Positions 4,230 through 38,299 of a stretch of 64,000 bases of DNA are shown piece by piece. The notes beneath the pieces were generated by a model. It was not told the DNA's origin, searched no databases, and was given only the letters and a program-made list of their open reading frames with translations. The first letter of the stretch is position 1. Each line of letters opens with the position of its first letter. Source of the DNA: Octopus sinensis (lineage: Eukaryota); contig NC_042997.1 in assembly GCF_006345805.1 (NCBI RefSeq), forward strand, positions 171,120,001 through 171,184,000. Direction: 5' to 3'. The position numbers and the translations under genes were made by a program.

Positions 4230-5400
4230 AAACGGCATGTCGCTGAAGTCAGTAGCATTCAATTGACGGATCACCAAATTGTTCCAATAACAATTTAATA
4301 AAGGAAGTGAACTTGAAAAGGTTAAAGTCACATCAAACAAAATTCATGGATCAAATTAATTATGTTATTGCTCAAGCTTTGAGTGTGGAGCTCGTCGATG
4401 ACTTAGAAATGACAAACATACGCTTTATCAATTGACGAACCAATTAGTATAAGCGTCATAAAAAGTGATGCCTTTATGAGTGAATATTTTTTTCCTACAA
4501 AAAACGAAGAATTCAAAACAATTTATTTAGGCTGAACAACTTAACGAAATTTTTTTATAATGAAACTCTTTTACTCTTTTACTTGTTTCAGTCATGTGAC
4601 TGTGGCCATGCTGGAGCACCGCCTTATAGTCGAGCAAATAGACCCCAGGACTTATTTTTTGTAAGCCTAGTACTTATTCTATCGGTCACTTTTGCCGAAC
4701 CGCTAAGTTACGGGGACGTTGGGAGGACAAACACAGACACATAAACATATACACACGCATACATATATACATATATACGACAGGCTTCTTTCAGTTTCCG
4801 TCTACCAAATCCACTCACAAGGCTTTGGTCGGCCCGAGGATATAGTAGAAGACACTTGCCCAAGGTGTCACGCAGTGGGACTGAACCCGGAACGATGTGG
4901 TTGGTAAGCAACCTACTTACCACACAGCCACTCCTGCGTTAAAGTTTTTAATAACAAACAACTTGTTGCAAATAATTACGTTGGATAAGAAGTAGATGGA
5001 GTAAATGCTGTTGATGTGCAGAATGCTTTAGTATTTTCGAAATTTGAAGAAATATGAGCCCCAAATATATGGCTGGGATTCGCTTTATGAAACCAAAAGG
5101 AAAATTTGTTTTGAGTTTGCGTCCGTCATCGAGACGACTACAAGAAAATTTAATACATGCTACAAAATTAGCCCGCCCCATGCATGACTCGTAGGTCGAT
5201 CGAAGGGAAATAAGTGTATACTAATGATCCAACGGCAACGGATGGATCACGTGGTCTGTATTATGTCAATTGCTGAATTACATGTTGCATACTCTTAGTA
5301 TTGAACTTCGGGGCACAACTAATAAATTTTATCATAATTTCACTTGCCATTTTATCTTGAATTTCGAGTCTATAAATGTAGCCTTTGAATTATCCTTCGT
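4230..5400 (+). pseudogene. Highly degenerate hAT-like transposase relic, split by a SINE-B
   Basis: Frameshifted peptides LKSHQTKFMDQINYVIAQALSVELVDDL / LSIDEPISISVIK (cf. FSLLIDESTDIS), VG*EVDGVNAV (cf. GIGTDGAS), FESINVAFE. Recognised by eye. Confidence 0.5.
4565..4938 (-). mobile_element. Full-length SINE-B
   Basis: Reverse complement of the 3392-3800 family. Confidence 0.9.
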
Positions 5401-10175: not shown

Positions 10176-10322
10176 CATACATACATACGTACGTACATAC
10201 ACACATACATACAAACAAAATGCTCTGTTGATGTTGAAATTCGAATGAAGGAGCCTAGTTAGAAACCGGCTCTTTCTCTGTTGGCAAGAAATCCTGAAAT
10301 AAAACTGAATAATGACATACAT

Positions 10323-10359
<37 letters not shown>

Positions 10360-10811
10360 ACACACACATACATACATACATACATACATACATACATACA
10401 TACATACGTACGTACGTACGTACATACATACATACATACATACATACATACATACAAACACACAAACATACATACATACATACATACATTCATACATACA
10501 TACATACACACACACATACATACATACATACATACATACATGCATACATACATACATACATACATAACATACATACATACATACATACATACATACACAC
10601 ACACACAAACATACATACATACATACAACATACATACATACATACATACATACATACACACACACAAACATACATACATACATACATACATACTACACAC
10701 ACATACACACACATACATACATACATACATACATACATACATACACACACAAACATACATACATACATACTACATACATACACACACACATACACACACA
10801 CATACATACAT

Positions 10812-10855
<44 letters not shown>

Positions 10856-11309
10856 CACACACACATACATACATACATACATACATCATACATACATACA
10901 TACATACATAATACATACATACATACATACATACATACATACATACATACATACATACAAACACACAAACATACATACATACATACATACATACATACAT
11001 ACACACACACAAACATACATACATACATACATACATACATGCATACATACATACATACATACATACATACATACATACATACATACATACATACACACAC
11101 ACACAAACATACATACATACATACAACATACATACATACATACATACATACATACACACACACAAACATACATACATACATACATACATACTACACACAC
11201 ATACACACACATACATACATACATACATACATACATACATACACACACAAACATACATACATACATACTACATACATACACACACACATACACACACACA
11301 TACATACAT

Positions 11310-11353
<44 letters not shown>

Positions 11354-11966
11354 CACACACACATACATACATACATACATACATCATACATACATACATA
11401 CATACATAATACATACATACATACATACATACATACATACATACATACATACATACAAACACACAAACATACATACATACATACATACATACATACATAC
11501 ACACACAAACATACATACATACATACATACATGCATACATACATACATACATACATACATACATACATACATGCATACATACATACATACATACACACAC
11601 ACAAACATACATACATACATACATACATACATGCATACATACATACATACATACACACACACAAACATACATACATACATACATACATACACACACATAC
11701 ACACACACATACATACATACATACATACATACATACATACACACACAAACATACATACATACATACATACATACATACACACACATACACACACACATAC
11801 ATACATACATACATACATACATACATACACCACACACACACACACACATACATACATACATACATACATACATACATACATACATACATACATACATACA
11901 TACATACATACATACATACATACATACATACATACATACATACATACATACATACATACATACATA
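10111..11966 (+). repeat. About 1.85-kb compound (ACAT)n/(AC)n microsatellite with 498-bp internal duplication
   Basis: Variant TACTACACAC recurs at 10691 and 11189; ORF-track frames also recur at 498-bp offset. Confidence 0.95.
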
Positions 11967-12240: not shown

Positions 12241-12452
12241 AATAAATGAATGAACGAAACAAGCTTATGCGAGATTTTCACCTTATTTGTAAATTCAGCA
12301 AGCGTGTCTGTATGTGGTCGCTCAATCTGCTAGGAATAGCAGCCGAATAAATGAATAAACGAAACAAGCTTATGCGAGATTTTCACCTTATTTGTAAATT
12401 CAACAAGCGTGTCTGTATGTGGTCATTCAATCTGCTAGGAATAGCAGCCGAA
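12241..12452 (+). repeat. Tandem duplication, 105-bp unit x2
   Basis: AATAAATGAA...AGCAGCCGAA at 12241 and 12346, few substitutions. Confidence 0.9.
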
Positions 12453-12571
12453 TTTTGTATAGATAACGCTGTAATCACAGCTGGTTACTATCATAGATAC
12501 TTGGTCTTCTTGATCGATGCGGACCAACTAAACCAATTTTTTTTTTACTTATAATCTTTTACTTGTTTCTT

Positions 12572-35221: not shown

Positions 35222-35667
35222 TATAATATGTGTGTGTGGGAGTATCTATGTATATATATGTGTGTGTGCGTGTGTATGTGTATGTGTTTGTGTGTGAGTA
35301 TCTAAGTATAAATGTATGTGTGTATGTGTGTGTGTGCGCGCGTCTTTATGTCTGTCACCTTCACCCTCATCGCTTGACAACCGGTGTTGGTTATCTCACG
35401 TCTCCATTGCATTGTGGTTCAACGAAATAGACCGACAGCATGAATGCTACACTAAAAACCAAACATAAGGTCTGGGGTCGATTTATTCGACTAAAACCTT
35501 TCAAAGTGGTGCTCTACCATGACTACTGTCCGGTGACTGAACATTTCAGTCATCTGACTGCGTTCATGGTGGGATTATCACCTTCAGATATTTCATTCGT
35601 TGTATGAAATATTAGTTGCAATATACATAATTTCATGCTTCAGTAGCAATGTCATTATGTATGAAAC

Positions 35668-36052
35668 TAAAGGCGGCGAGCTGGCAGAATCGTTAGCACG
35701 TCCGACGAAATGCTTCGCGGTAATTCGTCTGCTGTTACGTTCTGAGTTCAAATTCTGCCGAGGTCGACTCTGCTTTTCAGCCTTTCGGGGTCGATAAATT
35801 AAGTACCAGTTGCATACTGAGATCGATCCAATCGGCTGACCCCCTCCCCCAAAATTTCAGGCCTAGTACCCAAAGCAGAAAAATTACTAAAAAAGGCGGA
35901 GAGCAGGCAGAAACGTTTGCACGCCGTGTGAAATGCTTAGCAGTATTTCGTCTGTCTTTATGTTCTGAGTTCAGATTCCGCCGAGATCGACTTTGTCTTT
36001 TATCCTTCGGGGTCGATAAATTAAGTACCAGTTGCGTACTGGGGTCGCTCTA
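35668..36052 (+). mobile_element. Two adjacent SINE-A' copies
   Basis: Heads at about 35668 and 35893. Confidence 0.8.
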
Positions 36053-36111
36053 ACACTGAACTACGCCATTGGTTGTAATTGTTTTGGGAGTAACTTGATC
36101 TAAGAGCGTAT

Positions 36112-36523
36112 ACTCTTTACTCTTTTACTTGTTTCAGTCATTTGACTGCGGCCATGCTAGAGCACCGTCTTTAGTCGAGCAAATCGACCCCCAGGACTTA
36201 TTCTTTGTAAGCCTAGTACTTATTCTATCGGTCTCTTTTGCTGAACCACTAAGTTACGGGGACGTAAACACACCAGCATCGGTTGTCAAGCGATGTTGAG
36301 GGGACAAACACAGACACACAAACATATATACACACATACATATATGTATATACATATATACGACGGGCTTCTTTCAGCTTCTGTCTACCAAATCCACTCA
36401 CAAGGCTTTGGTCGACCTGAGACTATAGTAGAAAACACTTGCCTAAGGTGCCAACAGTAGGACTGAACCTGGAACCATGTGGTTGGTAAGCAAGCTACTT
36501 ACCACACAGCCACTCCTGCGCCC
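36112..36523 (-). mobile_element. Full-length SINE-B directly downstream of U6
   Basis: Head GGGCGCAGGAGTGGC abuts the U6 T5 end; tail AAAAGAGTAAAGAGT. Confidence 0.92.
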
Positions 36524-36573
36524 AAAAATATGGAACGCTTCCCGAATTTGTGTGTAATCCTTGCGCAGGGGCC

Positions 36574-36606
<33 letters not shown>

Positions 36607-36630
36607 AATATGTACCGCCGAAATGATTAC
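36524..36630 (-). pseudogene. U6: Full-length (107 nt) U6 snRNA copy, probably a pseudogene
   Basis: Minus strand GTAATCATTTCGGCGGTACATATTCTAAAATTGGAACGATACAGAGAAGATTAGCATGGCCCCTGCGCAAGGATTACACACAAATTCGGGAAGCGTTCCATATTTTT. ACAGAGA box and AGC triad intact; weakened 5' stem; 4 substitutions in the invariant core relative to the canonical sequence as recalled. Confidence 0.95.
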
Positions 36631-36934
36631 ATCATGGAAGAGCCATTTTAGCCATATAAAAACACATTTCTTATAGTAAAAGACCATAATATTCTGCGTT
36701 TAAACCTGCCAAATCGTTCTATATCTCTCTGTACACGGGTACACCGTGCAAATAACGACTTTTTAAATTTATGATTATTATGAAAGTATTATTTTAATTA
36801 CATTATAATTATTTCGCTAATTATATATTTTCCGCTCTGATTTAGCTGGTTTGACAAGTTACACTTTGGTGTTGAAACATCATAAAGAAAAAGTAGATTT
36901 TAAATTATGTGAATTGTTTGAAATATTTACATCT

Positions 36935-37650
36935 GGCGTGGCTGCGTGGTAAGAAGCATGCTTCTCAACTACATGGTTCCGGGTTCAGTCTCACTGAGTG
37001 GCACCTTGGGCGAGTGTCTTCTACTATAAGTCTCTGGCCGACCAAGACATTGTGAGTGGATTTGATAGACGGAAACTGAAAGAAGCCCGTCGCACATGTA
37101 TATGTATATATGTATTACATACAAAATTTAGAGGACTGACCATTAAAGTGGACAGCCTATATGCTAAACATAGACGTCAAATCGCCATTACCACGAAGAA
37201 TGTGCTTTCAAGAAAATCTCAGCAAAAAAATCAAAATGTAAAAATAAGCAAGACAAATGAAAATATACGAAATAAAAAACGATTACCTATGTACCATTGG
37301 TTTCACTTGTTAATAGTTACGTATATGAACGCGCAAATATCTGCAAGATCGTCAGCATAGTCAGTCGTTTACAAAACATAATTTCCAGAACTAGATACAG
37401 AACGTTACATGTATATATTTATATGTATGTGGTTGTCTTTGTGTTTGTGATTGTCTTCCCACCATCGCTTGACAACCGATGCTGGCGTGTTTACGTCCCC
37501 ATAACGTGGCGGTTCGGCAAAATAGACCGATAGAATAAATACTAGGCTTACAAAGAATAAGTTCTGGGGTCGATTTGTTCGATTAAAAATCCCTTCAAGG
37601 CGGTGCTAAGCATAGCCACAGTCTAATAACTGAATCAACTAAAAGAATAA
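36935..37650 (+). mobile_element. SINE-B split by about 315 bp of unique sequence in its microsatellite linker
   Basis: 5' half about 36935-37105; 3' half about 37420-37650. Confidence 0.8.
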
Positions 37651-38299
37651 AATAATAAAGAACCTAGGTTAAATGCAAATATTTCCCAAAATTCAGATCT
37701 TAATGTTGTCTTATTTTCCTGTTTTCTATTGTCTTCTTTAGTCTTACTTTTTACTTACTTCTTCCAGCTTTGGTAGGTGTCTTCTTTCGAACTATGTCTT
37801 GTGCGTGAAATTGGGTGGACGAAAATTCTGTGAAAACCTTTTTTTGTAATCCGTGATTTCTTTCCGATATTGATGTATTTCACACTGCAGAAATCGTTAA
37901 CTAACCGAAATGCACTTTTCATAAAAGCGACGAGCACGCATATACAACCGTACTCGCATGATCTCACATAATTTTACAGTTAGTAATTAACATAACAGTA
38001 TATGACAATTATAGAATAATCCAGTGCTTCATTCACCGCATAGCAAAAGAAATAGCATTTAGAAGAAATGTCAAAAAGTTAGAAATTAGTGAGTAAAACA
38101 AAACCAAGTAATTAACAGCACAAAATATAATGAGAAAAAAATCAAGTTATTGTTTAGCATTATAATCATATAATCATTTAAATAGATGGACGTTCTTCTA
38201 GTTCATTTTGCTGTGCTAGAATTATTTCTTGCAATTATATTAAAGTGATGAATTGATACGTCCTTATCAAGTGTTTTCGAAATTTTGCTCATTAGTGTA

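Follow-up and report, generated by a model that had tools for sequence, protein, structure and literature searches.

A full-length U6 small nuclear RNA (snRNA) sequence that is joined, on the same strand and without spacer, to the 5' end of a full-length SINE was identified in the window (the whole 64-kb stretch of DNA analyzed here), and this U6-SINE unit is probably a dead, one-off chimeric retrocopy that arose in a single retrotransposition event, when a reverse transcriptase switched template from SINE RNA to mature U6. Both parts are complete, they meet at an exact junction and they have decayed to an equal extent.

The complete window was compared with Rfam (cmscan) and a single match above the gathering threshold was obtained, namely U6 (RF00026) at positions 36524-36630 of the minus strand, with a score of 104.1 bits (gathering score 44) and an E value of 5e-26. 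The match covers positions 1-105 of the 105 positions of the model and is not truncated, which bears out the statement of an earlier note on this DNA that a complete U6 of 107 nt is present. The U6 RNA sequence, 107 nt in length, reads GTAATCATTTCGG...GCGTTCCATATTTTT, and its 3' end, CCATATTTTT, closes with a run of five T (36524-36528). The permissive Rfam mode, applied around the locus, returned just microsatellite-driven microRNA look-alikes far under the gathering score, and with these two Rfam searches no second U6 or U6-SINE junction was detected within the 64 kb.

U6 genes for comparison were reached by way of protein collections. Across U6 and the SINE head, the sense strand has an open frame of 62 aa (an antisense ORF over the junction has 37 aa), and the chance-open U6 frame, used as protein query, returned approximately 600 spurious ORFs, all of them translated U6 genes of other eukaryotes; the DNA behind five such ORFs led to real U6 loci in ENA and JGI assemblies. 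These approximately 600 entries of the public protein collection are registered as "hypothetical proteins" with the core ...KIGTIQRRLAWPLRKDDTQIREAFHIF, and some bear NCBI names from plant genomes, an annotation artefact; the entries can be used to track down U6 loci. Two of the loci are tandem arrays of identical U6 genes: L002 (1-14435, ENA ERZ25072740) has a period of 1677 bp and at least 8 units, and L003 (1-7495, ENA ERZ25084518) has a period of 1981 bp, the units of both arrays each having a TATA box near -30.

The U6 RNA is identical in L002, L003, L005 and L006 (GTACTCGCTTCGGCGGTACATATAC...), and GGCGGTAC, the distinctive 3' arm of the 5' stem, is common to these four loci and the window U6. 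Relative to this RNA, which belongs to other invertebrates and not to the host species, the window U6 shows 7 differences in 107 positions (6.5%): C4A, G7A, C8T, A24T, G75T, G80A and T89G. The ACAGAGA box and the AGC triad are both intact on direct reading; C4A, G7A and C8T fall within the 5' stem-loop, where two non-standard pairs were flagged by cmscan, and G75T, G80A and T89G are located in the conserved 3' domain of U6. A working U6 combines its invariant core with a 5' stem-loop that is intact, and this combination is absent here. Because of the seven substitutions, including three in the 5' stem-loop and three in the 3' domain, the window U6 is, to judge from its sequence, a pseudogene (36524-36630, minus strand) and not a working gene.

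The U6/SINE junction lies at 36523-36524 of the minus strand, where the last base of the oligo-T (36524) adjoins base 1 of the SINE (36523). The base that follows U6 on the same strand opens GGGCGCAGGAGTGGCTG (in a longer reading, GGGCGCAGGAGTGGCTGTGTGG), the head of the repeat, and the order at the junction is CCATATTTTT and then directly GGGCGCAGGAG, with a spacer of 0; the junction-spanning sequence is CGTTCCATATTTTT, followed by the SINE head. This direct reading agrees with the earlier description of a SINE head starting at the next base of the same strand without spacer. U6 is therefore found in sense, immediately 5' of the SINE and joined to it at its 3' oligo-T; U6 in sense directly 5' of a retroelement is the architecture of the U6/LINE and U6/SINE chimeras (PMC4476161; PMC11838501). 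The window contains 8 full-length 5' ends of this SINE over its 64 kb and both strands, which puts their same-strand density at only about 6e-5 per base; at any given locus, random placement would therefore not be expected to set one exactly against the U6 terminator.

The SINE, called SINE-B in the earlier note, extends over 36111-36523 of the minus strand and consists of a head, an internal TA/TG microsatellite, a conserved 3' domain and a short-repeat tail. Its family is represented in the window by 12 aligned copies, plus more fragments elsewhere, and the full-length copy nearest to the U6-linked SINE is 90% identical to it. All seven SINE copies with an intact 5' end (7/7) begin AGGCGCAGGAG behind unrelated flanks; the U6-linked SINE is complete to base 1, which is G in this copy and A in the family. 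The head contains an A-box-like element, TGGCTGTGTGG, at 36502-36512 (minus strand; SINE positions 12-22), which agrees at 10 of 11 positions with the Pol III A-box consensus TRGCNNAGTGG, and a B-box-like element, GGTTCAGTCCT, at 36459-36469 (minus strand; SINE positions 55-65), which resembles the B-box consensus GGTTCGANNCC. None of the SINE heads was called as a tRNA by ARAGORN, and the putative tRNA origin of the SINE is drawn solely from the resemblance of the two boxes. A multi-copy repeat with defined ends, an A-/B-box-like head and a LINE-type tail is nonetheless what is expected of a tRNA-derived SINE.

The tail of the family, AAGTAAAAGAGTAAAGAGTA, located at 36111-36130 (minus strand) in the U6-linked copy, was defined by aligning the 3' ends of nine copies and is built of short repeats, not poly(A). 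The U6-linked SINE reaches this tail, as the 3' partner in target-primed reverse transcription (TPRT) should. Because the tail is devoid of poly(A), it points to a stringent, tail-recognizing LINE as the probable partner of this SINE. With respect to the window consensus built from the other copies, the U6-linked SINE diverges at 13 of 166 positions in the head and at 9 of 189 in the 3' domain, which amounts to 22/355 or 6.2% overall.

Other repeats are present in the window. A second SINE copy, of another subfamily and approximately 14.5% diverged, occupies 36928-37659 on the plus strand, inverted and 304 bp upstream of U6; its 5' end points toward U6 and its internal microsatellite has grown to about 280 bp. 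The internal microsatellite of the U6-linked SINE family is cross-matched by an (ACAT)n microsatellite of 1.65 kb at 10315-11966 (about 420 units, 90% match), and two repeats of a 105-bp unit with 96% identity are located at 12241-12453.

Judged by their decay, 6.5% in U6 and 6.2% in the SINE, the two halves look equally old, and a single event would have made both, by way of a template switch. In the proposed sequence of steps, a LINE-encoded reverse transcriptase would start TPRT at the tail of the SINE RNA, copy this RNA up to its extreme 5' end, jump onto a mature U6 snRNA at its 3' oligo-U and copy this second template through to its 5' end, so that the joined cDNA, once integrated, would read U6 and then SINE. 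End-to-end jumping from the 5' terminus of a Pol III transcript would leave a SINE that is intact to base 1, as observed. The major 3' end of mature human U6 has 5 U (PMC6789731), and the five-T end of the window U6, which matches it, would by analogy support the chimera. In genomes with stringent LINEs, moreover, U6 is retroposed solely as a chimera with the LINE or its SINE (PMC4476161). The unit is not known to have a function; it lacks a self-made U6 promoter and has decayed at a neutral rate. The earlier note had already proposed a chimera, and this reading stands as the best explanation in view of the exact junction, the equal decay and the LINE-type tail, although it is not proven, a target-site duplication (TSD) not having been found.

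The same note had mentioned ligation of U6 to the retroelement RNA by RtcB as a route to such chimeras, and for a full-length Pol III transcript this route is less likely. The substrates of RtcB are U6 molecules with a terminal 2',3'-cyclic phosphate and RNAs that begin with a 5'-OH, and ligation is strongly reduced when the latter carry a 5' triphosphate instead (PMC6789731). The SINE RNA, being complete to base 1, corresponds to a primary Pol III transcript that presumably carried a 5' triphosphate, and for this reason template switching appears to be the more economical route.

The U6 part is preceded by a feature that argues against the chimera. A TATA-like element, TTTTTATAT, is located at 36654-36662 of the minus strand, -32 to -24 from the U6 start, exactly where it had been placed before; as written in the window the motif is TTTTTATA(T), and its reverse complement TATAAAAA is the canonical box. 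The TATA 8-mers of the fetched U6 genes occupy -32 to -25 in L002, -31 to -24 in L005 and -29 to -22 in L003, and the window element, which is followed by G, stands in register with them, at the spacing of a type-3 Pol III promoter. A chance test, in which a TATA-box-like 7-mer had to lie wholly inside -34 to -21, gave such a motif at 3.9% of all window positions and, when the flank (72% A+T) was shuffled, in 3.5% of the shuffles. In a retrocopy the element would be expected only by this chance of 3.5-4%, and owing to such a low rate the TATA feature alone favors a genomic U6 locus roughly 15-25 fold. The TATA box has been described as apparently universal among metazoan U6 genes, with a proximal sequence element (PSE) centered about 50-55 bp upstream, and the U6 promoter is an external, type-3 Pol III promoter that is not carried along by a retrocopy (PMC1761439).

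These observations agree with a different history, in which a dead genomic copy of U6 (an orphon) retained remains of its type-3 promoter and a SINE inserted later and independently, by chance right behind the five-T terminator. Such a decayed locus, offered as the alternative in the earlier note, gains weight from the register of the TATA-like element and its low chance rate; it is nevertheless ranked below the chimera, as a serious but distinctly less likely explanation. The run of five T is consistent with a type-3 terminator, for which at least four to five T are needed and which comprises 5-7 T in the fetched real genes. Genome-wide, given numerous U6 loci and the very high abundance of the SINE, one exact abutment is not impossible, and a scan that flags oddities would pick precisely such a case. 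The coincidence required is, however, base-exact, at about 6e-5 per base per strand, and the match between 6.5% and 6.2% decay would be a second coincidence. The seven substitutions leave no working U6. The orientation of the SINE is also wrong for a first nick targeted to the T-run: from the mechanism of TPRT, an endonuclease nicking T-runs would leave at the T-run the tail of the element, in antisense, and not its 5' end in sense. With regard to the promoter, the TATA-like element is not fully diagnostic, since a clean TATA is absent at 2 of the six fetched U6 loci (a weak AT-rich motif in L006 and none in L001), and no PSE was recognized upstream of the window U6, for which a position of about -45 to -70 would be expected. 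Outside the TATA box, no motif common to the upstream regions of L002, L003, L005 and L006 was seen, and PSEs are known to evolve fast (PMC1761439). Resembling upstream sequence was nevertheless noticed between the arrays and L005, a lone U6 locus obtained from the L003 sample, in a block at about -68 to -48 that may be the PSE. A search of the literature for cephalopod or mollusc U6 promoter sequences yielded nothing usable.

The flanks of the unit were examined for TSDs. The 5' flank of U6 (36631-36934, minus strand) comprises 304 nt with 72% A+T and is unique in the window, with 0 repeat matches in a self-BLAST; the 3' flank past the SINE tail (36054-36110, minus strand) is likewise unique in the window and stops at a second SINE type. 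Just past this flank, at 35657-35845 and 35892-36053 on the plus strand, two copies of another tRNA-like SINE (about 20 copies window-wide) sit in tandem. Ungapped and gapped searches compared the 30-35 nt before the SINE, or before U6, with the 45-60 nt past the SINE tail, covering the SINE-only and the outer configuration, and shuffles and random genomic pairs served as controls. For a duplication of the SINE only (U6 3' end versus 3' flank), the highest local score, 8, was reached by 499 of 500 shuffles; for an outer duplication around U6 plus SINE, the best candidate was the 6-mer GCTCTT, equalled or beaten in 155 of 500 shuffles (31%) and in 36% of random genomic pairs. The two negative statements made previously, that the U6 3' end is not repeated past the SINE and that no outer TSD is evident, thus hold for this locus. 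A query of the joined flanks, aimed at a paralogous empty site in the window, retrieved just 11-12-mers at chance level.

The argument that the earlier note built on the absence of a TSD is weak, because recognizable duplications are rare for this SINE family in the window: a plausible one was found for 1 of 7 other copies tested, hence the low power of the test. This sole plausible case, the copy c4938 (4565-4941, minus strand), has a candidate TSD of about 18 nt, GTTTGTTATTAAAAACTT versus GTTTCATTATAAAAAAATT, with 41 of 500 shuffles as good, and it may hint at the TSD length of the partner LINE. In vertebrates, stringent LINEs leave TSDs of 1-9 bp or none (PMC4476161). The missing TSD hence carries little weight toward either side: it counts against the chimera that no duplication was found around the whole unit, at the single locus examined, and the dead-gene history predicts this absence of an outer duplication; that history is in turn disfavored by the lack of a copy of the U6 3' end past the SINE, with the reservation that duplications of the family are rare.

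A history of two separate retropositions that happen to abut, either a SINE landing on the 3' end of a U6 retrocopy or a U6 cDNA inserted upstream of a resident SINE, would likewise accommodate the missing TSD and also the G at base 1 of the SINE, where the family has A. A two-step reading of this sort was considered by Doucet et al. (PMC4476161) for a U6atac/Alu pair with no TSD and an extra junction base. For the present locus it seems improbable: retroposition of a lone U6 RNA is not expected in a tail-dependent, non-poly(A) LINE system (PMC4476161), the positional coincidence needed equals that of a dead gene hit by a SINE, and the G at base 1 amounts to one transition among the changes of a 6% decayed copy.

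The layout of the unit, with a small-RNA head, a SINE body and a LINE-type tail, is that expected of a composite SINE, and SINEs headed by an snRNA are known, namely SINEU, in which the snRNA is U1 or U2 (Kojima, 2015, PMC4494074). The unit could in principle have founded, or belong to, a U6-headed SINE family that propagates, and the earlier note had raised the idea of a seed for such a SINE. This suggestion is unsupported and is the least credible of the explanations considered. The 64 kb hold a single copy, with no second U6 or U6-SINE junction, and this copy is itself 6% decayed; the external U6 promoter is lost by a retrocopy (PMC1761439), and the A and B boxes, which lie over 110 nt past the U6 start, would not be expected to drive the U6 part. 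The U6/L1 chimeras have also been reported as not propagating once inserted (PMC11838501). A recurrence of the junction in the genome, either because the LINE of this SINE habitually switches to U6 as its acceptor template or because a U6-headed composite is copied repeatedly, is considered unlikely.

Further occurrences were looked for in public collections. An exact scan of metagenome contigs with a 26-mer spanning the junction gave 0 matches, as did the SINE-head control in the same contigs, and the SINE-head control scan of GTDB genome contigs also gave 0 matches. Among proteins, other chimeras were sought through the 62-aa ORF in a collection of 5.8 billion proteins, where 0 of 55 inspected ORFs run into a SINE and the SINE-ORF control matched 1 protein. 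The metagenome, prokaryote-genome and protein collections searched are essentially without octopus DNA, and consequently these negatives say nothing.

In weighing the explanations, the prior was taken from vertebrates, in which exact abutments of U6 and a retroelement are overwhelmingly chimeras; the TATA-like element moves the balance about 15-25 fold toward a gene and the equal age about 3-4 fold toward a chimera. The standing given to each explanation is a matter of judgement, not computation, and on this basis the chimeric retrocopy is preferred.

Mammals, platypus and lizard already provide examples of this kind of event, and a cephalopod-type case would add one to these; no report of invertebrate U6 chimeras was found in the open-access subset of the literature. 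If the unit is a chimera, template switching onto U6 also took place in a genome of cephalopod type whose SINE/LINE system does not use poly(A), which would provide a lophotrochozoan case for the "general property" of non-LTR retrotransposons proposed by Doucet et al., and the unit would serve as a dated marker of past LINE activity. If it is instead a dead U6 gene followed by a SINE, the locus is ordinary, and if the junction proved recurrent by habitual switching, a first invertebrate catalogue of U6 chimeras would become available. The finding does not open a new mechanism. For annotation, the lesson is that the Rfam score alone is insufficient to call a full-length, repeat-adjacent U6 a gene.

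The closest known systems are the U6/Mon-1 chimeras of platypus and the U6/AnolisSINE2 chimeras of Anolis (Doucet et al., 2015, PMC4476161), with which the window unit shares the sense U6, the direct join and a non-poly(A), LINE-type tail. These vertebrate U6/SINE chimeras have very short TSDs or none, and none was found around the window unit; they are single events that were dead on arrival, as is proposed for the present case. The platypus chimeras, however, mostly contain a 5'-truncated U6, whereas U6 is full length here (PMC4476161), and the window unit differs further in its cephalopod-type host and in the TATA-like motif upstream. The human U6/L1 chimeric pseudogenes (PMC6789731, PMC11838501) are alike in the full-length U6, its oligo-U end and the sense join 5' of the retroelement, but their partner is a 5'-truncated L1 and they are flanked by TSDs of 7-20 bp, while the window unit has a complete Pol III SINE and none; human U6/L1 chimeras may form by template switching or by RtcB ligation, the latter being less likely here in view of the 5' triphosphate of a primary SINE transcript. 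With the type-3 U6 genes of the L002 and L003 arrays, the window U6 has in common a TATA-like element at about -30, a run of five T and an RNA that is 93.5% identical, and it differs from them in its seven substitutions, in being a solitary copy and in having a SINE in place of the 3' flank. Finally, SINEU (Kojima, 2015, PMC4494074) also places an snRNA 5' of a SINE-like unit, but it is multi-copy and headed by U1 or U2, in contrast to the single copy found here, whose U6 head needs an external promoter.
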